A DNA stretch of 21,038 nt from Diplonema japonicum (GCA_964019335.1 OZ025773.1:1-21038); one strand, 5' to 3'; counted from the first letter of the stretch, positions 1 to 21,038 are shown. The notes: a model not told the origin generated them from the letters alone. Made by a program: numbers and translations.

Positions 1-630
1 CCCCAAGGTGTCCCCAAAGGGGTAGGGTATAGGACCCCCAATATAAGGGGGTACAGAGAGGGGGGTTAGGATAAGGGTCTAATACATAGGGGTTAGTACC
101 AGTGGTTAGACAAGGGGTTAGTTAGTAGACAGTGTGTAGGGGCTAATACCACAGTATACAAGGGATAATGTACTACCCCATACCAGTGGTTACATACTCT
201 CTGCTAACAGTGTGTGTCCCTGGTAACAGTGTGTGTCTCTGCTAACAGGTACTTACTACAGGCCCCCAGACGTGCCCTGCTATGGAATCCCCTGTTATGA
301 GATACCACCACCAGACACCCTACTTGTGCTACCCCCAGAGAACACACTCTTCTGCTGGTGTTCCTGTTAGTTGGTGTTATCCCCAGATGTATAGCTACAC
401 CCTTCTGGAGCACTGCTTGTGCTACTACATGTATTACTACACACTGTCTGTATTACTCTCTGTGTTAGTGTGTAGTGTGTTACTGTACTTAGCTAAACAG
501 TGTGCTTCCTCTTGTATGTTATGGATATCAGTACCTCTGGATATACTCCCCACAGGCCTCCGTACCTCTGCTAACAGGTCCTAGCATCCCTAATCCCAGG
601 ATCTAAGGGTTCCGAGGGGGTCCCAATCTA

Positions 631-741
631 GGGGTTTACGTCCCTGTAGCTATGCAATTCCTGAAACCCTTGTGGGACACTACGGATGAATTCGTAGAAT
701 TACCTCGCTATATCCCCCACGCGCGCGCGCGCGCGTAAGGA
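631..741. repeat. Fourth, dispersed copy of the CpG element ending in (CG)8 (720-735)
   Basis: ggggtttacgtccctgtagc...cctgaaacccttgtgggacactacg...aattacctcgctatatcccccacgcgcgcgcgcgcgcgtaagga closely matches 5390-5494. Confidence 0.88.
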
Positions 742-1650
742 CATGAGTCCATATACAGGTCTCTACACCCTAATCCCCAGGTTAAAGCACCCTTTCTAAG
801 GATACCTCTGTACAGCACACCCGTTATCAGGGGTTACACACTCTCTGCTGTTCTCTGATAATGTGTAGTTACTGTACTTACTGTTATCCCATGCATACTG
901 TGGTATTACGTACTTCACACTGTCTATGTTCCTGTGTTATGGTACTTAGCTAAACAGTGTGTCTGTACTACCACCTGTATATACTCCCCACAGGTATCCC
1001 CAGATGTATAGCCACACCCTTATGGGATGATGTACTTACTATTAACATGTACTTCCATAGTTACTTACTTAGATACACTGTGTGAATACTGGTGCAACAA
1101 CATATTCACTGTGTTACACTGTCTGTACTAATGGTAGCACTACATGTCCCCAATACTACAGTATACAAGGGACTAATGTACTACCTACATATTACTAGAT
1201 ATACCCTGTACACCTAGATACCCCTTTTAGGCCTGAAATGAGGTCCGAGGCTCACCGGGCCTTTTCCCAAAAAGGGGATATCATTTCTCAGAATTGGTCT
1301 GGGACCATTCCCTTGAGTCTTCGAATAGAATGAGGTACCTACCAATAAAGTGGTATTTTGGGTATGCCCATAATCACCCCATATGACCTATCCTCTAGAC
1401 ACCCTACTATCTATGGTAGCACTACATGCCTCCATTGTGCTCTATGCACTACATACTATGTATTCCCTACGTACATACAGTATGTATTGGTGTGCATGAT
1501 ATGGTATACAGTACATGGCACTGCATCCTGTGCATTGGTGCCATTGCCTGTGCTACTAGATATGCCCTGTTCCTATCCTTCGTACTTCTCCAGATTAGTG
1601 GTTTATTTAGTTCTCATGATTCCACTACTTCTGGTATTCCCTCTCTGCAC

Positions 1651-3006
1651 ACCTCTGTACTACTGACAGCACTAGATATCATAGTTAGCACAGTATGTAT
1701 CCCCTGTGCTCTATGCACTGCACAGTATGTATTCCCTATGTACATACAGTATGTATTGGTGTGCATGATATCATATACAGTACATGGCACTGCATCCTGT
1801 GCATTGGTGCCATTGCCTGTGCTACTAGGATATGACGTACTTCCCTAGTTCCATACTCCTGGTATTCTCTGAGTTAGTACTTCTAGTATTCCACAGGTTC
1901 CTCCACTCTCAGGATACCTGTGCTACTGATATCATACTATGTACTAGCCATGATACCTATGACAGTACTACATGCATCCATTGCACATGTAGCACTACAC
2001 AGGATATATGCTCATGCATACTGTGTGTGTACTGGTGGTAGGATATGCTCTATGCCACACACTCAGTGTATTGGTGGCATTGCCTGTGTTAGTACTTCTA
2101 GTATTCCACTGGTTCCATACTCCTGTGTTCTCAGGGAATGGTGCCACTAGATATCTACTGCACAGCTAACATGGCATCTCCTTCTGTACTATGCCATGGT
2201 ATGTACTACAGGATGTACTACATGCATCCATTGCACATGTAGCACTACACAGGATATATGCTCATGCATACTGTGTGTATTGGTGTGCATGATATCATAT
2301 ACAGTACATGGCACCACCACCACAGCTACTGGTGGTATTACCTGTGTTACCAGGGATGTACTACTTCAGGGATTCCCCAAGTTAGTGGTTCTCCTGATTC
2401 CACTGCTTCTCTGGGATCACTACCCTTCTCAGGATACCTCTGTACTACTGACAGCACTAGATATCATAGTTAGCACAGTATGTATCCCCTGTGCTCTATG
2501 CACTACATACTATGTATTCCCTATGTACATACAGTATGTATTGGTGTGCATGATATCATATACAGTACATGGCACTGCATCCTGTGCATTGGTGCCATTG
2601 CCTGTGCTACTAGGATATGACGTACTTCCCTAGTTCCATACTCCTGGTATTCTCTGAGTTAGTACTTCTAGTATTCCACAGGTTCCTCCACTCTCAGGAT
2701 ACCTGTGCTACTGATATCATACTATGTACTAGCCATGATACCTATGACAGTACTACATGCATCCATTGCACATGTAGCACTACACAGGATATATGCTCAT
2801 GCATACTGTGTGTGTACTGGTGGTAGGATATGCTCTATGCCACACACTCAGTGTATTGGTGGCATTGCCTGTGTTAGTACTTCTAGTATTCCACTGGTTC
2901 CATACTCCTGTGTTCTCAGGGAATGGTGCCACTAGATATCTACTGCACAGCTAACATGGCATCTCCTTCTGTACTATGCCATGGTATGTACTACAGGATG
3001 TACTAC
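1651..3006 (+). repeat. ~570-bp near-perfect direct repeat (1651-2221 and 2436-3006, period 785) inside a mosaic of shorter sub-repeats spanning ~1410-3020
   Basis: Identical ORFs at 1832/2617 and 1920/2705. The block acctctgtactactgacagcactagatatc occurs at 1651 and 2436. Type B has a rearranged array with period 1036 (12741/13777). Confidence 0.9.
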
Positions 3007-3269
3007 TGATATCATACTATCTGTATTGGGGATACATCCTCTGTGTGTCTGCCCATACTTAGGATAGTACTGCTTAGAGGTATTCATGCTTAGTTAGTAT
3101 CCTTACCAGCATGTTCTCCTCATTATGAGGTACATGGTTGGTAGAGTATACCGCCACCATCCTCATGAGATGGTATGGCTAGAGAGAGAGCACACCACAT
3201 CCTTGGGATGCATTGGTGTGTGTACTCCTAGGATATACATGCCTGTACTCTCTGTACTTACTACAGTAT

Positions 3270-3485
3270 ATACTACTGATAGCACTGTTGGTGATCATGC
3301 TCTCTATGGTATCTACCACAGTGGGGATCATGGTTAGTGCTAGTAGCCTGTACACCTGATGTGCTATAGCCTTGCTGCTCATACTCAGGTACATGACTAC
3401 CAGGTATCGCATAGCTGATGCTGTTCACACCATGGCTAGAGCTATACTGGTGGATGCACAGCTACTGTCAGCAGCTACAGCTACA
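3270..3485 (+). CDS. nad1: Gene fragment (module): C-terminal part of NADH dehydrogenase subunit 1; ends approximate
   Basis: Manual translation with TGA=Trp (TGA at 3357): ILLIALLVIMLSMVSTTVGIMVSASSLYTWCAIALLLILRYMTTRYRIADAVHTMARAILVDAQLLSAATAT. LILRYMTTRYRIAD resembles the ND1 C-terminal motif (W)IRxxxPRxRYDQ preceded by hydrophobic helices. The sequence is unique to type A. The first in-frame stop is TAA at 3522-3524, beyond a flank repeat. Confidence 0.72.
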
Positions 3486-3537
3486 ATGAGTACTTACCAT
3501 TGTACTTACTACTGATACTACTAACAGTGTCTCTCCT

Positions 3538-3975
3538 TACTGATAGTACTATGGATATACTACTGATAGTACTGGTAGCACTACATGCATTGGCATGAGT
3601 ACTTACCATTGTACTTACTACAGGATATACTCTCTGTAGTACTGGTGGTACAGCTGGTGTCTTCTACGTGATAACAGGTATCCATGGTGGGCATGTTCTT
3701 GTTGGTGCCCTCCTTATCCTGGGATACACTCTCCAGGTACACATGTGAGGAGCATGAAGTGCTTACAGCCTCTCCTCTGTACATGGTGTCCTTTCTGTTA
3801 TCCTCTACTGGCACTTCGTAGATGGTGTCTGGATAACAGTGGTGTTCCTGGTGTACTGAGGACAGCTGTGCATGAGTATGATACTACTGATAGTACTATG
3901 GATATACTACTGATAGTACTGGTAGCACTACATGCATTGGCATGAGTACTTACCATTGTACTTACTACAGGATAT
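3538..3975 (+). repeat. 91-bp direct repeat bracketing the cox3 cassette (3538-3628 and 3885-3975)
   Basis: tactgatagtactatggatatactactgatagtactggtagcactacatgcattggcatgagtacttaccattgtacttactacaggatat occurs on both sides, offset 347. A partial copy follows nad1 at 3486-3511. Confidence 0.92.
3629..3880 (+). CDS. cox3: Gene fragment (module): C-terminal part of cytochrome c oxidase subunit 3; ends approximate
   Basis: Manual translation with TGA=Trp: TLCSTGGTAGVFYVITGIHGGHVLVGALLILGYTLQVHMWGAWSAYSLSSVHGVLSVILYWHFVDGVWITVVFLVYWGQLCMSM. It contains both COX3 hallmarks: F..TG.HG.HV..G (from 3662) and YWHFVD.VW (3806-3832), followed by the terminal YW (TAC TGA, 3854-3859). Confidence 0.95.
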
Positions 3976-4558
3976 CCTATTGATAGTACTACGGATGTAC
4001 TTCCCTAGAGAGCACACCATCATCCTCATGACTAGGATATGGTATGAGATACTCTCTGTAGTACTGGTGGTATTCCCCACAGGCATTGTTGCCTAGGATG
4101 TACACCACCACCATTCCCTTCTCTAGGGATAATGGAGTAGCTACAGTATGAGGTACATGGTTGGTAGAGTATACCGCCACCATCCTCATGACTAGGATAT
4201 GAGGTACATGGTTACTAGAGTATACTGCCAGCATACTCTGTAGATGGTATGGCTAGAGAGCACAGCTGCTCTTCTAGTAGATAATACCTCTACTCTGTAC
4301 ATCCCATGATCCATGCATGACATGATCTATGGTAATGATACCGTTAGTGGTATGCTCCATGATGTCATGGCTAGAGAGATGGTATGTTCTCCCACTCTCT
4401 GGATATGCTGGCATCCTTAGGATGTACCATCATGCCATGATATGATAATACTACTACTATGATAAGTAGGCATACACACTGTGTTAGTGCTAGTACATGT
4501 ATATCATATACTGTATGTACTACTACACAGAGTACTTACATGATAAGTAGTATGCTGG

Positions 4559-5144
4559 TATCTCTACAGACACTCTCAGGATGTGGTGGTGTCTAGAGAT
4601 GGTGGTCCAAGCTAGGGATCCTGGGATCTAGAGGTTGGGTCTCCACCCCTGGGATCCTGGGATCTAGAGAAGGGGTCCCCATCCCCAGGATGATGTCATG
4701 AGGGGATGAGTAGGGTTATGATACCATTAATACAGTTAGTACATCACTATGTAATACTAGTATTATGCATGTACATATATCCTCCGTATGCATGGGATAG
4801 ATATATGATACATACACAGTACTTACATAGTATGTAATGATAGTATTATAGTTATCTCTACAGACACTCTCAGGATGTGGTGGTGTCTAGAGATGGTATC
4901 CAAGCTAGGGATCCTGGGATCTAGAGGTTGGGTCTCCACCCCTGGGATCCTGGGATCTAGAGAAGGGGTCCCCATCCCCAGGATGATGTCATGAGGGGAT
5001 GAGTAGGGTTATGATACCATTAATACAGTTAGTACATCATTATGTAATACTAGTATTATGCATGTACATATATCCCCCGTATACATGGGATAGATATATG
5101 ATACATACACAGTACTTACATAGTATGTAATGATAGTATTATAG
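4559..5144 (+). repeat. Tandem duplication of a ~293-bp block (4559-4851 and 4853-5144); single copy in type B (15973-16264)
   Basis: tatctctacagacactctcaggatg...gatagtattatag occurs twice with a few substitutions. Each block has two internal gggatcctgggatctagag motifs. Confidence 0.92.
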
Positions 5145-5202
5145 GTGGTAATAGGAGGGTATATTGAGGGGTCCCAGAAGGGCTGGATAAGGGGGCATGC
5201 TA

Positions 5203-5494
5203 GGGGTTTACGTCCCTGTAGCCCTCCGATTCCTGAACCCCTTCAGGGCTGTATCGGGTGAATTCGTAGAATTACCCCGTAGGAGCCCTGGAATGGTTTA
5301 CGTCCCTGTAGCCCTCCAATATTGGGACACCTCTCTGGGCTCCTACGGGTGATTTCTGCAAATTAACCCGCTACGTCCCAGAGAATATCTACGTCCCTGT
5401 AGCCCTCCAATTCCTGAAACCCTTGTGGGACACTACGTAAGAATTATGCAAATTACCTCGCTATATCCCCCACGCGCGCGCGCGCGCGTAAGGA
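5203..5494. repeat. Three degenerate ~90-bp CpG-containing repeats ending in (CG)8; candidate control region
   Basis: tacgtccctgtagc at 5209, 5299 and 5390. A perfect 13-bp inverted repeat at 5276-5288/5337-5349. (CG)8 at 5473-5488. Function is inferred only. Confidence 0.8.
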
Positions 5495-8400
5495 TAACTG
5501 TTAGGATAGTAAGGTGCCCCAAGGTGTCCCCAAAGGGGTAGGGTATAGGACCCCCAATATAAGGGGGTACAGAGAGGGGGGTTAGGATAAGGGTCTAATA
5601 CATAGGGGTTAGTACCAGTGGTTAGACAAGGGGTTAGTTAGTAGACAGTGTGTAGGGGCTAATACCACAGTATACAAGGGATAATGTACTACCCCATACC
5701 AGTGGTTACATACTCTCTGCTAACAGTGTGTGTCCCTGGTAACAGTGTGTGTCTCTGCTAACAGGTACTTACTACAGGCCCCCAGACGTGCCCTGCTATG
5801 GAATCCCCTGTTATGAGATACCACCACCAGACACCCTACTTGTGCTACCCCCAGAGAACACACTCTTCTGCTGGTGTTCCTGTTAGTTGGTGTTATCCCC
5901 AGATGTATAGCTACACCCTTCTGGAGCACTGCTTGTGCTACTACATGTATTACTACACACTGTCTGTATTACTCTCTGTGTTAGTGTGTAGTGTGTTACT
6001 GTACTTAGCTAAACAGTGTGCTTCCTCTTGTATGTTATGGATATCAGTACCTCTGGATATACTCCCCACAGGCCTCCGTACCTCTGCTAACAGGTCCTAG
6101 CATCCCTAATCCCAGGATCTAAGGGTTCCGAGGGGGTCCCAATCTAGGGGTTTACGTCCCTGTAGCTATGCAATTCCTGAAACCCTTGTGGGACACTACG
6201 GATGAATTCGTAGAATTACCTCGCTATATCCCCCACGCGCGCGCGCGCGCGTAAGGACATGAGTCCATATACAGGTCTCTACACCCTAATCCCCAGGTTA
6301 AAGCACCCTTTCTAAGGATACCTCTGTACAGCACACCCGTTATCAGGGGTTACACACTCTCTGCTGTTCTCTGATAATGTGTAGTTACTGTACTTACTGT
6401 TATCCCATGCATACTGTGGTATTACGTACTTCACACTGTCTATGTTCCTGTGTTATGGTACTTAGCTAAACAGTGTGTCTGTACTACCACCTGTATATAC
6501 TCCCCACAGGTATCCCCAGATGTATAGCCACACCCTTATGGGATGATGTACTTACTATTAACATGTACTTCCATAGTTACTTACTTAGATACACTGTGTG
6601 AATACTGGTGCAACAACATATTCACTGTGTTACACTGTCTGTACTAATGGTAGCACTACATGTCCCCAATACTACAGTATACAAGGGACTAATGTACTAC
6701 CTACATATTACTAGATATACCCTGTACACCTAGATACCCCTTTTAGGCCTGAAATGAGGTCCGAGGCTCACCGGGCCTTTTCCCAAAAAGGGGATATCAT
6801 TTCTCAGAATTGGTCTGGGACCATTCCCTTGAGTCTTCGAATAGAATGAGGTACCTACCAATAAAGTGGTATTTTGGGTATGCCCATAATCACCCCATAT
6901 GACCTATCCTCTAGACACCCTACTATCTATGGTAGCACTACATGCCTCCATTGTGCTCTATGCACTACATACTATGTATTCCCTACGTACATACAGTATG
7001 TATTGGTGTGCATGATATGGTATACAGTACATGGCACTGCATCCTGTGCATTGGTGCCATTGCCTGTGCTACTAGATATGCCCTGTTCCTATCCTTCGTA
7101 CTTCTCCAGATTAGTGGTTTATTTAGTTCTCATGATTCCACTACTTCTGGTATTCCCTCTCTGCACACCTCTGTACTACTGACAGCACTAGATATCATAG
7201 TTAGCACAGTATGTATCCCCTGTGCTCTATGCACTGCACAGTATGTATTCCCTATGTACATACAGTATGTATTGGTGTGCATGATATCATATACAGTACA
7301 TGGCACTGCATCCTGTGCATTGGTGCCATTGCCTGTGCTACTAGGATATGACGTACTTCCCTAGTTCCATACTCCTGGTATTCTCTGAGTTAGTACTTCT
7401 AGTATTCCACAGGTTCCTCCACTCTCAGGATACCTGTGCTACTGATATCATACTATGTACTAGCCATGATACCTATGACAGTACTACATGCATCCATTGC
7501 ACATGTAGCACTACACAGGATATATGCTCATGCATACTGTGTGTGTACTGGTGGTAGGATATGCTCTATGCCACACACTCAGTGTATTGGTGGCATTGCC
7601 TGTGTTAGTACTTCTAGTATTCCACTGGTTCCATACTCCTGTGTTCTCAGGGAATGGTGCCACTAGATATCTACTGCACAGCTAACATGGCATCTCCTTC
7701 TGTACTATGCCATGGTATGTACTACAGGATGTACTACATGCATCCATTGCACATGTAGCACTACACAGGATATATGCTCATGCATACTGTGTGTATTGGT
7801 GTGCATGATATCATATACAGTACATGGCACCACCACCACAGCTACTGGTGGTATTACCTGTGTTACCAGGGATGTACTACTTCAGGGATTCCCCAAGTTA
7901 GTGGTTCTCCTGATTCCACTGCTTCTCTGGGATCACTACCCTTCTCAGGATACCTCTGTACTACTGACAGCACTAGATATCATAGTTAGCACAGTATGTA
8001 TCCCCTGTGCTCTATGCACTACATACTATGTATTCCCTATGTACATACAGTATGTATTGGTGTGCATGATATCATATACAGTACATGGCACTGCATCCTG
8101 TGCATTGGTGCCATTGCCTGTGCTACTAGGATATGACGTACTTCCCTAGTTCCATACTCCTGGTATTCTCTGAGTTAGTACTTCTAGTATTCCACAGGTT
8201 CCTCCACTCTCAGGATACCTGTGCTACTGATATCATACTATGTACTAGCCATGATACCTATGACAGTACTACATGCATCCATTGCACATGTAGCACTACA
8301 CAGGATATATGCTCATGCATACTGTGTGTGTACTGGTGGTAGGATATGCTCTATGCCACACACTCAGTGTATTGGTGGCATTGCCTGTGTTAGTACTTCT

Positions 8401-8785
8401 AGTATTCCACTGGTTCCATACTCCTGTGTTCTCAGGGAATGGTGCCACTAGATATCTACTGCACAGCTAACATGGCATCTCCTTCTGTACTATGCCATGG
8501 TATGTACTACAGGATGTACTACTGATATCATACTATCTGTATTGGGGATACATCCTCTGTGTGTCTGCCCATACTTAGGATAGTACTGCTTAGAGGTATT
8601 CATGCTTAGTTAGTATCCTTACCAGCATGTTCTCCTCATTATGAGGTACATGGTTGGTAGAGTATACCGCCACCATCCTCATGAGATGGTATGGCTAGAG
8701 AGAGAGCACACCACATCCTTGGGATGCATTGGTGTGTGTACTCCTAGGATATACATGCCTGTACTCTCTGTACTTACTACAGTAT

Positions 8786-9001
8786 ATACTACTGATAGCA
8801 CTGTTGGTGATCATGCTCTCTATGGTATCTACCACAGTGGGGATCATGGTTAGTGCTAGTAGCCTGTACACCTGATGTGCTATAGCCTTGCTGCTCATAC
8901 TCAGGTACATGACTACCAGGTATCGCATAGCTGATGCTGTTCACACCATGGCTAGAGCTATACTGGTGGATGCACAGCTACTGTCAGCAGCTACAGCTAC
9001 A
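8786..9001 (+). CDS. nad1: Second copy of the nad1 C-terminal module
   Basis: Same sequence as 3270-3485 at +5516. Confidence 0.72.
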
Positions 9002-9144
9002 ATGAGTACTTACCATTGTACTTACTACTGATACTACTAACAGTGTCTCTCCTTACTGATAGTACTATGGATATACTACTGATAGTACTGGTAGCACTAC
9101 ATGCATTGGCATGAGTACTTACCATTGTACTTACTACAGGATAT

Positions 9145-9396
9145 ACTCTCTGTAGTACTGGTGGTACAGCTGGTGTCTTCTACGTGATAACAGGTATCCA
9201 TGGTGGGCATGTTCTTGTTGGTGCCCTCCTTATCCTGGGATACACTCTCCAGGTACACATGTGAGGAGCATGAAGTGCTTACAGCCTCTCCTCTGTACAT
9301 GGTGTCCTTTCTGTTATCCTCTACTGGCACTTCGTAGATGGTGTCTGGATAACAGTGGTGTTCCTGGTGTACTGAGGACAGCTGTGCATGAGTATG
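9145..9396 (+). CDS. cox3: Second copy of the cox3 C-terminal module
   Basis: Same sequence as 3629-3880 at +5516. Confidence 0.95.
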
Positions 9397-12300
9397 ATAC
9401 TACTGATAGTACTATGGATATACTACTGATAGTACTGGTAGCACTACATGCATTGGCATGAGTACTTACCATTGTACTTACTACAGGATATCCTATTGAT
9501 AGTACTACGGATGTACTTCCCTAGAGAGCACACCATCATCCTCATGACTAGGATATGGTATGAGATACTCTCTGTAGTACTGGTGGTATTCCCCACAGGC
9601 ATTGTTGCCTAGGATGTACACCACCACCATTCCCTTCTCTAGGGATAATGGAGTAGCTACAGTATGAGGTACATGGTTGGTAGAGTATACCGCCACCATC
9701 CTCATGACTAGGATATGAGGTACATGGTTACTAGAGTATACTGCCAGCATACTCTGTAGATGGTATGGCTAGAGAGCACAGCTGCTCTTCTAGTAGATAA
9801 TACCTCTACTCTGTACATCCCATGATCCATGCATGACATGATCTATGGTAATGATACCGTTAGTGGTATGCTCCATGATGTCATGGCTAGAGAGATGGTA
9901 TGTTCTCCCACTCTCTGGATATGCTGGCATCCTTAGGATGTACCATCATGCCATGATATGATAATACTACTACTATGATAAGTAGGCATACACACTGTGT
10001 TAGTGCTAGTACATGTATATCATATACTGTATGTACTACTACACAGAGTACTTACATGATAAGTAGTATGCTGGTATCTCTACAGACACTCTCAGGATGT
10101 GGTGGTGTCTAGAGATGGTGGTCCAAGCTAGGGATCCTGGGATCTAGAGGTTGGGTCTCCACCCCTGGGATCCTGGGATCTAGAGAAGGGGTCCCCATCC
10201 CCAGGATGATGTCATGAGGGGATGAGTAGGGTTATGATACCATTAATACAGTTAGTACATCACTATGTAATACTAGTATTATGCATGTACATATATCCTC
10301 CGTATGCATGGGATAGATATATGATACATACACAGTACTTACATAGTATGTAATGATAGTATTATAGTTATCTCTACAGACACTCTCAGGATGTGGTGGT
10401 GTCTAGAGATGGTATCCAAGCTAGGGATCCTGGGATCTAGAGGTTGGGTCTCCACCCCTGGGATCCTGGGATCTAGAGAAGGGGTCCCCATCCCCAGGAT
10501 GATGTCATGAGGGGATGAGTAGGGTTATGATACCATTAATACAGTTAGTACATCATTATGTAATACTAGTATTATGCATGTACATATATCCCCGTATACA
10601 TGGGATAGATATATGATACATACACAGTACTTACATAGTATGTAATGATAGTATTATAGGTGGTAATAGGAGGGTATATTGAGGGGTCCCAAAGGGGCTG
10701 GATAAGGGGGCATGCTAGGGGTTTACGTCCCTGTAGCCCTCCGATTCCTGAACCCCTTCAGGGCTGTATCGGGTGAATTCGTAGAATTACCCCGTAGGAG
10801 CCCTGGAATGGTTTACGTCCCTGTAGCCCTCCAATATTGGGACACCTCTCTGGGCTCCTACGGGTGATTTCTGCAAATTAACCCGCTACGTCCCAGAGAA
10901 TATCTACGTCCCTGTAGCCCTCCAATTCCTGAAACCCTTGTGGGACACTACGTAAGAATTATGCAAATTACCTCGCTATATCCCCCACGCGCGCGCGCGC
11001 GCGTAAGGATAACTGTTAGGATAGTAAGGTGCCCCCCAAGGTGTCCCCAAAGGGGTAGGGTATAGGACCCCCAATATAAGGGGGGGTACAGAGAGGGGTT
11101 AGTACCAGTGGTTAGACAAGGGGTTAGTTAGTAGACAGTGTGTAGGGGCTAATACCATAGTATACAAGGGATAATGTACTACCCCATACCAGTGGTTACA
11201 TACTCTCTGCTAACAGTGTGTGTCCCTGGTAACAGTGTGTGTCTCTGCTAACAGGTACTTACTACAGGCCCCCAGACGTGCCCTGCTATGGAATCCCCTG
11301 TTATGAGATACCACCACCAGACACCCTACTTGTGCTACCCCCAGAGAACACACCCTTCTGCTGGTGTTCCTGTTAGTTGGTGTTATCCCCAGATGTATAG
11401 CTACACCCTTCTGGAGCACTGCTTGTGCTACTACATGTATTACTACACACTGTCTGTGTTACTCTCTGTGTTAGTGTGTAGTGTGTTACTGTACTTAGCT
11501 AAACAGTGTGCTTCCTCTTGTATGTTATGGATATCAGTACCTCTGGATGTACTCCCCACAGGCCTCCGTACCTCTGCTAACAGGTCCTAGCATCCCTAAT
11601 CCCAGGATCTAAGGGTTCCAAGGGGTCCCAATCTAGGGGTTTACGTCCCTGTAGCTATGCAATTCCTGAAACCCTTGTGGGACACTACGGATGAATTCGT
11701 AGAATTACCCCGCTATATCCCCCACGCGCGCGCGCGCGCGTAAGGACATGAGTCCATATACAGGTCTCTACATCCTAATCCCCAGGTTAAAGCACCCTTT
11801 CTAAGGATACCTCTGTACAGCACACCCGTTATCAGGGGTTACACACTGTCTGCTGTTCTCTGATAATGTGTAGTTACTGTACTTACTGTTATCCCATGCA
11901 TACTGTGGTATTACGTACTTCACACTGTCTATGTTCCTGTGTTATGGTACTTAGCTAAACAGTGTGTCTGTACTACTACCTGTATATGCTCCCCACAGGT
12001 ATCCCCAGATGTATAGCCACACCCTTATGGGATGATGTACTTACTATTAACATGTACTTCCATAGTTACTTACTTAGATACACTGTGTGAATACTGGTGC
12101 AACAACATATTCACTGTGTTACACTGTCTGTACTAATGGTAGCACTACATGTCCCTAATACTACAGTATACAAGGGATAATGTACTACCTACATATTACT
12201 AGATATACCCTGTACACCTAGATACCCCTTTTAGGCCTGAAATGAGGTCCGAGGCTCACCGGGCCTTTTCCCAAAAAGGGGATATCATTTCTCAGAATTG

Positions 12301-14500
12301 GTCTGGGACCATTCCCTTGAGTCTTCGAATAGAATGAGGTACCTACCAATAAAGTGGTATTTTGGGTATGCCCATAATCACCCCATATGACCTATCCTCT
12401 AGACACCCTATTATCTATGGTAGCACTACATGCCTCCATTGTGCTCTATGCACTACATACTATGTATTCCCTACGTACATACAGTATGTATTGGTGTGCA
12501 TGATATGGTATACAGTACATGGCACTGCATCCTGTGCATTGGTGCCATTGCCTGTGCTACTAGATATACCCCTGTTCCTATCCCCGTATTTCTCCAGATT
12601 AGTGGTTTATTAGTTCTCATGATTCCACTACTTCTGGTATTCCCTCTCTGCACACCTCTGTACTACTGACAGCACTAGATATCATAGTTAGCACAGTATG
12701 TATCCCCTGTGCTCTATGCACTACATACTATGTATTCTCTATGTACATACAGTATGTATTGGTGTGCATGATATCATATACAGTACATGGCACCACCACA
12801 GCTACTGGTGGTATTACCTGTGCTAGCTGGAGATGGTGTAGTTCCATACTCCTGGTATTCTCTGAGTTAGTACTTCTAGTATTCCACAGGTTCCTCCACT
12901 CTCAGGATACCTGTGCTACTGATATCATACTATGTACTAGCCATGATACCTATGACAGTACTACATGCATCCATTGCACATGTAGCACTACACAGGATAT
13001 ATGCTCATGCATACTGTGTGTGTACTGGTGGTAGGATATGCTCTATGCCACACACTCAGTGTATTGGTGGCATTACCTGTGTTAGTACTTCTAGTATTCC
13101 ACTGGTTCCATACTCCTGTGTTCTCAGGGAATGGTGCCACTAGATATCTACTGCACAGCTAACATGGCATCTCCTTCTGTACTATGCCATGGTATGTACT
13201 ACAGGATGTACTACATGCATCCATTGCACATGTAGCACTACACAGGATATATGCTCATGCATACTGTGTGTATTGGTGTGCATGATATCATATACAGTAC
13301 ATGGCACCACCACAGCTACTGGTGGTATTACCTGTGCTACCAGGGATGTACTACTTCTGGTATTCCCAAGTTAGTGGTTCTCCTGATTCCACTGCTTCTC
13401 TGGGATCACTACCCTTCTAAGGATACCTCTGTACTACTGACAGCACTAGATATCATAGTTAGCACAGTATGTATCCCCTGTGCTCTATGCACTGCACAGT
13501 ACGTATTCCCTATGTACATACAGTATGTATTGGTGTGCATGATATGGTATACAGTACATGGCACTGCATCCTGTGCATTGGTGCCATTGCCTGTGCTACT
13601 AGGATATGACGTACTTTCCTAGTTCCATACTCCTGGTATTCTCTGAGTTAGTACTTTCCCTAACTTAGGGTTACCACTACTCTCAGGATACCTCTGTACT
13701 ACTCCTAGCACTAGATATCATAGTTAGCACAGTATGTATCCCCTGTGCTCTATGCACTACATACTATGTATTCCCTATGTACATACAGTATGTATTGGTG
13801 TGCATGATATCATATACAGTACATGGCACCACCACAGCTACTGGTGGTATTACCTGTGCTAGCTGGAGATGGTGTAGTTCCATACTCCTGGTATTCTCTG
13901 AGTTAGTACTTCTAGTATTCCACAGGTTCCTCCACTCTCAGGATACCTGTGCTACTGATATCATACTATGTACTAGCCATGATACCTATGACAGTACTAC
14001 ATGCATCCATTGCACATGTAGCACTACACAGGATATATGCTCATGCATACTGTGTGTGTACTGGTGGTAGGATATGCTCTATGCCACACACTCAGTGTAT
14101 TGGTGGCATTACCTGTGTTAGTACTCCTGGTATTCCACTGGTTCCATACTCCTGTGTTCTCAGGGAATGGTGCCACTAGATATCTACTGCACAGCTAACA
14201 TGGCATCTCCTTCTGTACTATGCCATGGTATGTACTACAGGATGTACTACTGATATCATACTATCTGTATTGGGGATACATCCTCTGTGTGTCTGCCCAT
14301 ACTTAGGATAGTATTGCTTAGAGGTATTCATGCTTAGTTAGTATCCTTACCAGCATGTTCTCCTCATTATGAGGTACATGGTTGGTAGAGTATACCGCCA
14401 CCATCCTCATGAGATGGTATGGCTAGAGAGCACACCATCATCCTTGGGATGCATTGGTGTCTGTACTCCTAGGATATACATGCCTGTACTCTCTGTACTA

Positions 14501-14899
14501 CTGATAGCACTACATGCATTACCTGTGCTAGCTAGGAATGGTATGAGTACTTACCACTGTACTTACTGATAGTATGACAGTACTGATACTGGTGGTATCA
14601 TATCTACTGGTGATACTACTGATCAATGCAGCCCATGCCTTCGTAGCACTGTGCATGGCTAGCTATACTCGTAGTGCTAGTGCATTGGCCCACATGTACT
14701 TAGGATATGGTCTTCCTGCCATCCTACGTATTGTACTGGGCTGTATAGAGATGGCATCTACGTCCTTCCGTAGTGTCTCTCTTACTCTACGTGCAGCCTG
14801 CAATGCCATTGCTGGTCATGTGCTGGTAGGAGTGCTGCTAGAGATGACCATCGTAGCTGATAGCACTACATGCATTACCTGTGCTAGCTAGGAATGGTA
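14501..14899 (+). repeat. 43-bp direct repeat bracketing the atp6 cassette (14501-14543 and 14857-14899)
   Basis: ctgatagcactacatgcattacctgtgctagctaggaatggta occurs on both sides. Confidence 0.92.
14574..14855 (+). CDS. atp6: Gene fragment (module): internal part of ATP synthase F0 subunit a; ends approximate
   Basis: ALAHMYLGYGLPAILRIVLGCIEMASTSFRSVSLTLRAACNAIAGHVLVGVLLEM matches the subunit-a pattern LAH...G.P..L..+L..IE..S...R.+SL..RL..N..AGH+L, including the essential Arg (CGT at 14790-14792). The last transmembrane helix is missing. The ORF tail (DSTTCITCAS) is a flanking direct repeat starting at 14857. Confidence 0.93.
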
Positions 14900-14937
14900 C
14901 GGGTACATTCTACTAGCATTACTACAGGATGTACTAC

Positions 14938-15387
14938 TACTGATAGTACTGGTAGCACTACATGCATTGGCATGAGTACTTACCATTGTACTTACTACAG
15001 TATGTATGAGAGCAGCTGTGCTCTCTGAGTATTGCTAGCATGACATACTCTGTATTACAGCTGTGTGTTGTCTCTGGTACACAGGCTGATAGCATGGACA
15101 GAGTACTGATGAGGATACTAGAGAGCATAGTTAGTGCATCCCTCTGCTCACAGCTATGCACAGCAGCTCTGCGTACGTCAGTAGCATCAGCACAGGCTCA
15201 CAGGACGTCTGTGTCCTGCACTAGCCTCTCTGCTTAGCTATGGATCTACTGATAGTACTGGTAGCACTACATGCATTGGCATGAGTACTTACCACTGTAC
15301 TTACTACTGGATATACTACTACTGATAGTACTGGTAGCACTACATGCATTGGCATGAGTACTTACCATTGTACTTACTACAGGATAT
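14938..15387 (+). repeat. ~60-bp cassette-flanking repeat, three copies around nad7 (14938-15000, 15247-15307, 15320-15387)
   Basis: tactgatagtactggtagcactacatgcattggcatgagtacttacca(t/c)tgtacttactac; this is the same core as the cox3 flanks. Confidence 0.9.
15001..15234 (+). CDS. nad7: Gene fragment (module): internal part of NADH dehydrogenase subunit 7 (49-kDa/NuoD); ends approximate
   Basis: With TGA=Trp (15007): YVWEQLCSLSIASMTYSVLQLCVVSGTQADSMDRVLMRILESIVSASLCSQLCTAALRTSVASAQAHRTSVSCTSLSA. GTQADSMDRVLMRILESIVSASLCSQ aligns by eye to the NAD7 motif GT.GDCYDRYL.R.EEM..S..I..Q, with an upstream W and Y at about the expected spacing. In-frame TAG at 15235-15237 probably lies outside the module. 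Confidence 0.8.
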
Positions 15388-18300
15388 CCTATTGATAGTA
15401 CTACGGATGTACTTCCCTAGAGAGAGCACACCATCATCCTCATGACTAGGATATGGTATGAGATACTCTCTGTAGTACTGGTGGTATTCCCACAGGCATT
15501 GTTGCCTAGGATGTACACCACCACGCCATCCCTAGAACAGGGATAATGGAGTAGCTACAGTATGAGGTACATGGTTGGTAGAGTATACCGCCACCATCCT
15601 CATGACTAGGATATGAGGTACATGGTTACTAGAGTATACTGCCAGCATACTCTGTAGATGGTATGGCTAGAGAGCACAGCTGCTCTTCTAGTAGATAATA
15701 CCTCTACTCTGTACATCCCATGATCCATGCATGACATGATCTATGGTAATGATACCGTTAGTGGTATGCTCCATGATGTCATGGCTAGAGAGATGGTGTG
15801 TTCTCCCACTCTCTGGATATGCTGGCATCCTTAGGATGTACCATCATGCCATGATATGATAATACTACTACTATGATAAGTAGGCATACACACTGTGTTA
15901 GTGCTAGTACATGTATATCATATACTGTATGTACTACTACACAGAGTACTTACATGATAAGTAGTATGCTGGTATCTCTACAGACACTCTCAGGATGTAG
16001 TGGTGTCTAGAGATGGTGGTCCAAGCTAGGGATCCTGGGATCTAGAGGTTGGGTCTCCACCCCTGGGATCCTGGGATCTAGAGAAGGGGTCCCCATCCCC
16101 AGGATGATGTCATGAGGGGATGAGTAGGGTTATGATACCATTAATACAGTTAGTACATCATTATGTAATACTAGTATTATGCATGTACATATATCCCCGT
16201 ATACATGGGATAGATATATGATACATACACAGTACTTACATAGTATGTAATGATAGTATTATAGGTGGTAATAGGAGGGTATATTGAGGGGTCCCAAAGG
16301 GGCTGGATAAGGGGGCATGCTAGGGGTTTACGTCCCTGTAGCCCTCCGATTCCTGAACCCCTTCAGGGCTGTATCGGGTGAATTCGTAGAATTACCCCGT
16401 AGGAGCCCTGGAATGGTTTACGTCCCTGTAGCCCTCCAATATTGGGACACCTCTCTGGGCTCCTACGGGTGATTTCTGCAAATTAACCCGCTACGTCCCA
16501 GAGAATATCTACGTCCCTGTAGCCCTCCAATTCCTGAAACCCTTGTGGGACACTACGTAAGAATTATGCAAATTACCTCGCTATATCCCCCACGCGCGCG
16601 CGCGCGCGTAAGGATAACTGTTAGGATAGTAAGGTGCCCCCCAAGGTGTCCCCAAAGGGGTAGGGTATAGGACCCCCAATATAAGGGGGGGTACAGAGAG
16701 GGGTTAGTACCAGTGGTTAGACAAGGGGTTAGTTAGTAGACAGTGTGTAGGGGCTAATACCATAGTATACAAGGGATAATGTACTACCCCATACCAGTGG
16801 TTACATACTCTCTGCTAACAGTGTGTGTCCCTGGTAACAGTGTGTGTCTCTGCTAACAGGTACTTACTACAGGCCCCCAGACGTGCCCTGCTATGGAATC
16901 CCCTGTTATGAGATACCACCACCAGACACCCTACTTGTGCTACCCCCAGAGAACACACCCTTCTGCTGGTGTTCCTGTTAGTTGGTGTTATCCCCAGATG
17001 TATAGCTACACCCTTCTGGAGCACTGCTTGTGCTACTACATGTATTACTACACACTGTCTGTGTTACTCTCTGTGTTAGTGTGTAGTGTGTTACTGTACT
17101 TAGCTAAACAGTGTGCTTCCTCTTGTATGTTATGGATATCAGTACCTCTGGATGTACTCCCCACAGGCCTCCGTACCTCTGCTAACAGGTCCTAGCATCC
17201 CTAATCCCAGGATCTAAGGGTTCCAAGGGGTCCCAATCTAGGGGTTTACGTCCCTGTAGCTATGCAATTCCTGAAACCCTTGTGGGACACTACGGATGAA
17301 TTCGTAGAATTACCCCGCTATATCCCCCACGCGCGCGCGCGCGCGTAAGGACATGAGTCCATATACAGGTCTCTACATCCTAATCCCCAGGTTAAAGCAC
17401 CCTTTCTAAGGATACCTCTGTACAGCACACCCGTTATCAGGGGTTACACACTGTCTGCTGTTCTCTGATAATGTGTAGTTACTGTACTTACTGTTATCCC
17501 ATGCATACTGTGGTATTACGTACTTCACACTGTCTATGTTCCTGTGTTATGGTACTTAGCTAAACAGTGTGTCTGTACTACTACCTGTATATGCTCCCCA
17601 CAGGTATCCCCAGATGTATAGCCACACCCTTATGGGATGATGTACTTACTATTAACATGTACTTCCATAGTTACTTACTTAGATACACTGTGTGAATACT
17701 GGTGCAACAACATATTCACTGTGTTACACTGTCTGTACTAATGGTAGCACTACATGTCCCTAATACTACAGTATACAAGGGATAATGTACTACCTACATA
17801 TTACTAGATATACCCTGTACACCTAGATACCCCTTTTAGGCCTGAAATGAGGTCCGAGGCTCACCGGGCCTTTTCCCAAAAAGGGGATATCATTTCTCAG
17901 AATTGGTCTGGGACCATTCCCTTGAGTCTTCGAATAGAATGAGGTACCTACCAATAAAGTGGTATTTTGGGTATGCCCATAATCACCCCATATGACCTAT
18001 CCTCTAGACACCCTATTATCTATGGTAGCACTACATGCCTCCATTGTGCTCTATGCACTACATACTATGTATTCCCTACGTACATACAGTATGTATTGGT
18101 GTGCATGATATGGTATACAGTACATGGCACTGCATCCTGTGCATTGGTGCCATTGCCTGTGCTACTAGATATACCCCTGTTCCTATCCCCGTATTTCTCC
18201 AGATTAGTGGTTTATTAGTTCTCATGATTCCACTACTTCTGGTATTCCCTCTCTGCACACCTCTGTACTACTGACAGCACTAGATATCATAGTTAGCACA

Positions 18301-20178
18301 GTATGTATCCCCTGTGCTCTATGCACTACATACTATGTATTCTCTATGTACATACAGTATGTATTGGTGTGCATGATATCATATACAGTACATGGCACCA
18401 CCACAGCTACTGGTGGTATTACCTGTGCTAGCTGGAGATGGTGTAGTTCCATACTCCTGGTATTCTCTGAGTTAGTACTTCTAGTATTCCACAGGTTCCT
18501 CCACTCTCAGGATACCTGTGCTACTGATATCATACTATGTACTAGCCATGATACCTATGACAGTACTACATGCATCCATTGCACATGTAGCACTACACAG
18601 GATATATGCTCATGCATACTGTGTGTGTACTGGTGGTAGGATATGCTCTATGCCACACACTCAGTGTATTGGTGGCATTACCTGTGTTAGTACTTCTAGT
18701 ATTCCACTGGTTCCATACTCCTGTGTTCTCAGGGAATGGTGCCACTAGATATCTACTGCACAGCTAACATGGCATCTCCTTCTGTACTATGCCATGGTAT
18801 GTACTACAGGATGTACTACATGCATCCATTGCACATGTAGCACTACACAGGATATATGCTCATGCATACTGTGTGTATTGGTGTGCATGATATCATATAC
18901 AGTACATGGCACCACCACAGCTACTGGTGGTATTACCTGTGCTACCAGGGATGTACTACTTCTGGTATTCCCAAGTTAGTGGTTCTCCTGATTCCACTGC
19001 TTCTCTGGGATCACTACCCTTCTAAGGATACCTCTGTACTACTGACAGCACTAGATATCATAGTTAGCACAGTATGTATCCCCTGTGCTCTATGCACTGC
19101 ACAGTACGTATTCCCTATGTACATACAGTATGTATTGGTGTGCATGATATGGTATACAGTACATGGCACTGCATCCTGTGCATTGGTGCCATTGCCTGTG
19201 CTACTAGGATATGACGTACTTTCCTAGTTCCATACTCCTGGTATTCTCTGAGTTAGTACTTTCCCTAACTTAGGGTTACCACTACTCTCAGGATACCTCT
19301 GTACTACTCCTAGCACTAGATATCATAGTTAGCACAGTATGTATCCCCTGTGCTCTATGCACTACATACTATGTATTCCCTATGTACATACAGTATGTAT
19401 TGGTGTGCATGATATCATATACAGTACATGGCACCACCACAGCTACTGGTGGTATTACCTGTGCTAGCTGGAGATGGTGTAGTTCCATACTCCTGGTATT
19501 CTCTGAGTTAGTACTTCTAGTATTCCACAGGTTCCTCCACTCTCAGGATACCTGTGCTACTGATATCATACTATGTACTAGCCATGATACCTATGACAGT
19601 ACTACATGCATCCATTGCACATGTAGCACTACACAGGATATATGCTCATGCATACTGTGTGTGTACTGGTGGTAGGATATGCTCTATGCCACACACTCAG
19701 TGTATTGGTGGCATTACCTGTGTTAGTACTCCTGGTATTCCACTGGTTCCATACTCCTGTGTTCTCAGGGAATGGTGCCACTAGATATCTACTGCACAGC
19801 TAACATGGCATCTCCTTCTGTACTATGCCATGGTATGTACTACAGGATGTACTACTGATATCATACTATCTGTATTGGGGATACATCCTCTGTGTGTCTG
19901 CCCATACTTAGGATAGTATTGCTTAGAGGTATTCATGCTTAGTTAGTATCCTTACCAGCATGTTCTCCTCATTATGAGGTACATGGTTGGTAGAGTATAC
20001 CGCCACCATCCTCATGAGATGGTATGGCTAGAGAGCACACCATCATCCTTGGGATGCATTGGTGTCTGTACTCCTAGGATATACATGCCTGTACTCTCTG
20101 TACTACTGATAGCACTACATGCATTACCTGTGCTAGCTAGGAATGGTATGAGTACTTACCACTGTACTTACTGATAGT

Positions 20179-20460
20179 ATGACAGTACTGATACTGGTGG
20201 TATCATATCTACTGGTGATACTACTGATCAATGCAGCCCATGCCTTCGTAGCACTGTGCATGGCTAGCTATACTCGTAGTGCTAGTGCATTGGCCCACAT
20301 GTACTTAGGATATGGTCTTCCTGCCATCCTACGTATTGTACTGGGCTGTATAGAGATGGCATCTACGTCCTTCCGTAGTGTCTCTCTTACTCTACGTGCA
20401 GCCTGCAATGCCATTGCTGGTCATGTGCTGGTAGGAGTGCTGCTAGAGATGACCATCGTA
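20179..20460 (+). CDS. atp6: Second copy of the atp6 internal module
   Basis: Same as 14574-14855 at +5605; identical translation in the ORF track. Confidence 0.93.
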
Positions 20461-20605
20461 GCTGATAGCACTACATGCATTACCTGTGCTAGCTAGGAAT
20501 GGTACGGGTACATTCTACTAGCATTACTACAGGATGTACTACTACTGATAGTACTGGTAGCACTACATGCATTGGCATGAGTACTTACCATTGTACTTAC
20601 TACAG

Positions 20606-20839
20606 TATGTATGAGAGCAGCTGTGCTCTCTGAGTATTGCTAGCATGACATACTCTGTATTACAGCTGTGTGTTGTCTCTGGTACACAGGCTGATAGCAT
20701 GGACAGAGTACTGATGAGGATACTAGAGAGCATAGTTAGTGCATCCCTCTGCTCACAGCTATGCACAGCAGCTCTGCGTACGTCAGTAGCATCAGCACAG
20801 GCTCACAGGACGTCTGTGTCCTGCACTAGCCTCTCTGCT
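20606..20839 (+). CDS. nad7: Second copy of the nad7 internal module
   Basis: Same as 15001-15234 at +5605. Confidence 0.8.
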
Positions 20840-21038
20840 TAGCTATGGATCTACTGATAGTACTGGTAGCACTACATGCATTGGCATGAGTACTTACCAC
20901 TGTACTTACTACTGGATATACTACTACTGATAGTACTGGTAGCACTACATGCATTGGCATGAGTACTTACCATTGTACTTACTACAGGATATCCTATTGA
21001 TAGTACTACGGATGTACTTCCCTAGAGAGAGCACACCA

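Follow-up and report, generated by a model that had tools for sequence, protein, structure and literature searches.

Diplonemid mitochondria are among the most extreme gene-expression systems known. In Paradiplonema (Diplonema) papillatum, the mitochondrial DNA (mtDNA) consists of 81 small chromosomes, 6- and 7-kb circles of the classes A and B, each made up of a class-specific constant region of about 95% of its length and a unique cassette that nearly always contains a single gene module; the modules are transcribed separately, joined in trans and subject to U-appendage, and intron-like motifs are absent (PMC3035467, PMC5658414). The stretch of DNA analyzed here, termed the window, corresponds to the complete contig C129 (21,038 nt; OZ025773.1) of the 62.5-Mb Diplonema japonicum assembly GCA_964019335.1, which comprises 132 contigs. 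It likewise contains small chromosomes composed of a constant region and a cassette zone carrying gene modules, but unlike those of D. papillatum these chromosomes are about 5.5 kb long, with two modules per zone.

The mtDNA of D. japonicum strain YPF1604 itself has been inventoried previously. Its 30 chromosomes fall into five classes and contain 80 modules; 23 chromosomes carry several modules, and it is due to the many modules per cassette that the median cassette measures about 1 kb (Kaur et al. 2020, NAR 48:2694, PMC7049700). The same study reported trans-splicing and U-appendage, but left the chromosome sizes undetermined, because short reads could not span the repeats. The genome note on D. 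japonicum describes a “multipartite” mitochondrial genome, assembled with MitoHiFi (PMC13598402). Diplonema ambulator, a close relative, also possesses many multi-module cassettes and cassette-like arrays, such as the combination of y2-m3 and nad1-m5 on one chromosome (Valach et al. 2017, PMC5658414), and shares conserved overlapping modules with D. japonicum; as a separate species, it has constant regions of its own. The mtDNA of the kinetoplastids (kDNA), which are the sister group, resembles the diplonemid system in its many small circles, in the heavy post-transcriptional repair of transcripts and in uridine addition by a terminal uridylyltransferase (TUTase). It differs in that contiguous cryptogenes reside on maxicircles and are repaired by internal U insertion and deletion, directed by guide RNAs encoded on minicircles, whereas the small chromosomes of the window carry pieces of genes. 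To our knowledge, no guide RNAs occur in the diplonemid system.

The window is almost certainly a contig of the multipartite mtDNA of D. japonicum YPF1604, containing two chromosomes of the same class which carry gene modules that are joined in trans. Evidence for this is provided by a segment of 204 nt on the plus strand (3279-3482; second copy at 8795-8998), which, translated with genetic code 4, is identical in 68 of 68 residues to positions 235-302 of QHQ98658.1, deposited as “NADH dehydrogenase subunit 1 [Diplonema japonicum]” and scoring 98 bits on Pfam NADHdh. When 1.84 billion proteins were searched exhaustively by phmmer with 38 residues of this translation, a single match was returned, 100% identical, which is the same protein. 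Since this D. japonicum Nad1 is the only protein-database match, the host appears to be a diplonemid (Diplonemea, Euglenozoa). A fragmented mtDNA of some other lineage, or of an undescribed diplonemid, is accordingly very improbable; the exact and sole match to D. japonicum Nad1 speaks against it, as do the cassettes of about 1 kb with several modules, a published peculiarity of D. japonicum (PMC7049700). The suggestion in an earlier note on this DNA, made from the sequence alone, that the species or the chromosome class may be undescribed thus fails, as the organism is D. japonicum YPF1604 and its module and cassette inventory was published by Kaur et al.

The nad1 segment is a terminal module, the 5' border of which was set by an RNA-like contig (see below). 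Its predecessor is located on another contig of the assembly, at C126:9953-10189 on the minus strand, and encodes residues 156-234 with 79/79 identity. The C126 module stops at residue 234 and the window module starts at residue 235, so that they abut exactly; the deposited mature Nad1 spans both. Consecutive nad1 modules thus reside on different chromosomes. The TGA codon at 3357-3359 aligns with a tryptophan of the deposited protein, showing that TGA encodes Trp in these modules. At its C-terminus, deposited Nad1 reads ...SAATAFFFFF, while the DNA past position 3482 continues as ACAATGAGTAC and does not encode the five phenylalanines; a tract of uridines would thus be added post-transcriptionally, and the FFFFF end, as judged from the deposited protein rather than from reads, fits U-appendage editing with an appended 3' U-tract. 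The terminal module was not recognized by Pfam or NCBIfam profiles, nor by a phmmer search of Protein Data Bank (PDB) sequences at E values up to 10, and the whole-assembly search with PF00146 did not flag it.

Repeat finding and self-BLAST resolved the 21,038 nt into four head-to-tail units in the order A, A2, B, B2, corresponding to about 1.9 laps of a chromosome A followed by about 1.8 laps of a chromosome B. The first lap of A (1-5516, plus strand) comprises 5,516 bp, with the constant region and a two-module cassette zone, and matches 5517-10589 identically. The second lap, A2 (5517-11006, plus strand), is of A-type up to 10589 and of B-type from 10590 on, as indicated by a three-way alignment of diagnostic sites; its identity to A is 99.9%, with three differences in total, all of them downstream of 10589 and all representing B-type states. 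The first lap of B (11007-16611, plus strand; 5,605 bp) is 100% identical, over 4,427 bp, to B2 (16612-21038, plus strand), which is ended by the contig end. Outside the cassette zones, A and B share 95.6-97.6% identity. The constant region, which accounts for about 85% of each chromosome, is non-coding and rich in repeats.

Three differences between A and B beyond the cassettes had not been mentioned in the earlier note. A 293-bp tandem repeat is present in two copies in A (4559-5144, plus strand) and in one copy in B (about 16020-16319); an array of nested direct repeats in the constant region, with periods of about 269 and 785 nt, extends over 1408-3000 in A and over 12412-14250 in B (plus strand), being about 250 bp longer in the latter; and the unit border differs by an indel of 27 bp. 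A second cassette at this border, as considered from the 27-bp difference, was rejected in favor of a plain indel.

The cassette zones are bounded by flanking motifs typical of the class, which are found again on all units belonging to it. Zone A (3259-3995, plus strand; 737 nt; identical copy at 8775-9511) lies between a left motif at 3100-3258 and a right motif at 3996-4200, and zone B (14500-15407, plus strand; 908 nt; identical copy at 20105-21012) between 14344-14499 and 15408-15614, all on the plus strand. Copies of the left motif that are 92-97% identical occur on C124-C128; the right motif was delimited by motif mapping. Each zone contains two unique segments, each of them one gene module, and all four modules are read on the plus strand, with TGA as Trp. 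In zone A, the nad1 module is followed by a terminal cox3 module of 230 nt (3645-3874, plus strand; second copy at 9161-9390), which contains three in-frame TGA codons and corresponds to about positions 166-254 of the 258 positions of Pfam COX3; in the whole-assembly profile search it scored 24.6 bits, above the cut-off of 23.8. Zone B contains an internal atp6 module of about 268 nt (14589 to about 14856, plus strand; second copy at 20194-20461), which covers about positions 94-171 of the 217 of ATP-synt_A, with E values of 1.1e-6 (Pfam) and 8.8e-10 (NCBIfam TIGR01131). Its 5' border was set by RNA-like data, and its 3' border is taken from the start of the spacer repeat.

The second segment of zone B (about 15001-15237, plus strand; second copy at 20606-20842) is probably an internal nad7 module of at most 237 nt, to judge from its similarity to positions 118-168 of the 271 of Complex1_49kDa. 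NuoD, the 49-kDa subunit, was the top match in both profile libraries (PF00346, E 0.0027; NCBIfam NuoD models, E 0.01-0.03), and a piece on C127 matches the preceding nad7 profile positions 87-113. The borders of this module are those of the unique segment between the spacers and were not defined by RNA. A phmmer search of PDB sequences with the nad7 piece gave no match at E values up to 10, and the whole-assembly search with PF00346 did not flag it. Minus-strand and alternative plus-strand open frames of the nad1 and nad7 segments were rejected, as it was the plus-strand frame that matched Nad1 and NuoD.

No unit of the window contains a complete gene. Rfam searches at gathering thresholds returned no family in the window, hence no group I or group II intron, and no tRNA was found in it with ARAGORN. 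The flanks at the module borders consist of class-wide spacer repeats and lack intron signatures. The earlier note had described two units of about 5.5 kb with nearly the same sequence, a variable zone of less than 1 kb, gene pieces of 200-300 bp, and the absence of complete genes and of intron signatures, all of which agrees with the lengths and identities given above. Its gene assignments were also borne out, that of nad1 by the complete match, those of cox3 and atp6 by the profile scores, and that of nad7 more weakly.

Public sequencing runs, available as Logan contigs without strand or transcript ends, were compared with the window over positions 8790-14789 (6,000 bases). In one of them, X10, the RNA nature of which we infer from its depth pattern and from joined contigs, the depth amounted to 1,700-14,000 on modules and spacers, as compared to 50-300 over most of the constant region; the modules were 10-100 times deeper than most of the backbone. 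Three X10 contigs combine a module with sequence that is located elsewhere: a contig of 431 nt contains 8795-8991 (nad1) and 234 nt from elsewhere, a contig of 710 nt contains 9161-9390 (cox3) and 480 nt from elsewhere, and a contig of 360 nt contains 14589-14765 (atp6) and 183 nt from elsewhere, each matching its module with no differences; the extensions of these contigs are known by their lengths. The nad1, cox3 and atp6 modules are thus joined, in what we take to be RNA, to sequence that does not adjoin them in the DNA, in line with the joining to partner modules that the earlier note had predicted. The same contigs set the 5' borders of these three modules and the 3' end of the cox3 module. 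The runs X18 and X6, by contrast, are DNA-like; in them, the depth of the constant region exceeds that of a single cassette about 13-20 times, which is what a backbone common to many chromosomes would give.

Other contigs of the assembly carry the same backbone. Copies of the constant region with 96-99% identity are present on C124-C128, C130 and C132, and among the contigs compared at least ten distinct cassette zones of this class were found, 0.7-1.15 kb each, in units of about 5.2 to 6.0 kb. C122, C123 and C131 represent other chromosome classes with periods of 7,671, 8,457 and 6,710 bp, respectively, and share with this backbone just islands of 100-300 nt at 83-93% identity; one of the shared islands is a 105-nt repeat located at 637-741 and 5390-5494. 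Outside C122-C132, no match to the constant region was found in the 62.5-Mb assembly. Pieces of cox1 are present on four contigs (C127, C123, C126 and C124), some of them on the strand opposite to the backbone, and pieces of the nad2/4/5 type on three (C128, C124 and C130). COX3 profile positions 103-195 are encoded on C130 and C132, and positions 166-254 on C129. The gene pieces each cover 50-110 profile positions, and Pfam searches of the 62.5 Mb for cox3, atp6, nad1, nad7, cox1 and the nad2/4/5 family gave partial matches only, without any full-length copy. A cassette segment shared by C125 and C127, considered as a module present on two chromosomes, was rejected, as it comprises an internal copy of the left flanking motif and a generic repeat.

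These results support the diplonemid trans-splicing system proposed in the earlier note: further cassettes, at least ten of them distinct, share the constant region, modules are joined to non-adjacent sequence in RNA-like contigs, the Pfam searches of the assembly gave no full-length copy of the genes, and the sole protein match, that of the nad1 piece, is to a diplonemid rather than to a non-euglenozoan organism. They also bear on the view that the units are nuclear copies of mtDNA, or dead gene fragments without function. The absence of a complete gene from every unit and the many open frames in low-complexity sequence would be compatible with it. However, the nad1 module matches the published mature Nad1 exactly and its neighbor module abuts to the residue; the pieces are abundant in X10 and joined there to non-adjacent sequence; the units reside on small contigs of their own, C122-C132, with no match to the constant region elsewhere; and the depth of the constant region in the DNA-like runs is that of a sequence shared by many chromosomes. 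We therefore give this view practically no chance.

The order A-A-B-B of the units most likely reflects the route taken through the assembly graph, given circular molecules with sequence in common, because the laps are identical, the switch falls in a shared repeat, and the neighbors of the B-type cassette differ between C126 and C129. The change from A to B is located in the copy of the 293-bp repeat at 10297-10590, with all diagnostic sites being of A-type before 10589 and of B-type after it. A copy of the B cassette which is 98.7% identical to 14500-15407 occurs at C126:3606-4510, next to other units than on C129, which is what arbitrarily chosen routes through an entangled graph would give; with the borders given here, all 13 differences between the two copies fall in spacer or flank, the one at 14864 just past the inferred end of atp6. 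Alternatively, the order could reflect a real molecule, that is, tandem homo- and hetero-multimers which arise by recombination in shared repeats and exist besides 5.5-kb monomer circles. Different units are indeed mixed in tandem on C124, C126, C128 and C129, the switch exactly within the shared 293-bp repeat is what a homologous crossover would produce, and the project's HiFi reads, about 9.4 kb long on average (7.93 Gb in 8.4e5 reads; PMC13598402), are longer than one unit. The identity of A and A2 up to the switch and of B and B2, however, looks as if an assembler had lapped a circle twice, and five contigs consist entirely of repeated laps of a single unit. Together with the differing neighbors of the B-type cassette, this makes multimers quite unlikely, and we prefer the assembly path.

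A spacer repeat of about 70-95 nt, identified from repeat families and spacer mapping, is present at 3880-3975 (plus strand), with further copies or variants at about 3538-3628 and at 14501-14567, 14857-14923, 14935-15000 and 15238-15390. Every module of the class, including those of same-class cassettes on other contigs, has a copy next to it on one side or both; this placement makes the multi-module cassette zones resemble single-module cassettes strung together. The 5' borders of the three modules with RNA-like data (nad1, cox3 and atp6) follow the spacer after 0-21 nt of unique sequence, past a ...TACTG... motif. In D. papillatum, by comparison, no cis-element of transcript processing has been found, and the paper by Kaur et al. 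(PMC7049700) mentions neither spacers nor recombination in its main text. Given that there are but three such borders, and that TACTG-like words abound in the backbone, the offset between the spacer or TACTG and the 5' border is an idea, not a result. It is rather doubtful, though conceivable, that the multi-module chromosomes of D. japonicum, unusually low in number, arose by repeat-mediated fusion of cassettes with one module each and perhaps continue to be reshuffled in this way, with hetero-multimers in vivo, and that the spacer acts as a common processing signal.

Following the diplonemid literature (PMC3035467, PMC4889940, PMC5658414, PMC12699882), each module would be transcribed together with its flanks, and both ends would then be trimmed. 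Where needed, a TUTase would add uridines to the module (U-appendage), or a DYW-type enzyme would deaminate it (C-to-U, A-to-I), and it would finally be ligated to its cognate neighbor, presumably without the participation of introns or known cis-motifs. The current candidate for the ligation step is the RtcB-type ligase RTCB1, RtcB being the enzyme family proposed for the joining of modules in D. papillatum. A nuclear gene of the RtcB family is located at C36:86825-88049 on the minus strand of the assembly; it is split over two frames next to each other, which cover Pfam positions 1-264 and 253-426.

Several observations weigh against the interpretation of the window as two such chromosomes with trans-joined modules, or limit it. 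Head-to-tail repeats are consistent with circles but do not prove a circular topology. X10 is not on record as RNA. The assignment of nad7 is based on sub-threshold profile scores (17.3 bits), and this module lies outside the 6,000 bases compared with RNA. Moreover, no C-to-U or A-to-I differences between RNA and DNA were found in the three modules compared with X10; as clustered substitution editing is confined to some diplonemid modules in the literature, their absence here says little.

Both the system and the species are already described, the mtDNA of this strain in 2020, and the window adds no new kind of system. Modestly new are the complete chromosome lengths, the full constant region, and the spacer repeat that the modules have in common; in comparison with the inventory of Kaur et al., which stems from the same organism and the deposited Nad1 of which matches the window module completely, the entire constant region is available here, together with unbroken laps measuring 5,516 bp (A) and 5,605 bp (B). 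The gain is thus one of annotation rather than discovery, but complete long-read chromosomes, in which the modules are exactly delimited and the spacers plainly visible, should be useful for studies on processing signals and on the origin of multi-module cassettes.

The constant region furthermore contains two imperfect inverted repeats, one at 5243-5382 with 46-nt arms (5243-5288 and 5337-5382) which are 78% complementary and separated by a 48-nt spacer, and one with 43-nt arms at 126-168 and 884-926. Both are located in the GC-richer part of the constant region and are conserved in all units. The cox1 modules at C126:9589-9831 and C124:10524-10682, both on the plus strand, are oriented opposite to the backbone and to the nad1 module of the same cassette; cassettes of this class thus carry modules on both strands.

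The depth in X10 was also high over about 0.5-1 kb on either side of the cassettes (9590-10190 and 13790-14590), and low in the far constant region (10990-13400), which hints at transcription of the cassette together with the nearby backbone, although depth derived from contigs is a poor measure. Four runs labelled as other organisms (X6, X7, X11 and X5) contain about two thirds of the compared stretch. In X6 the variants of the constant region are the same and the cox3 cassette is identical, at about ten-fold lower depth; the run looks like the same organism mislabelled, or like library carry-over, rather than cross-species conservation.

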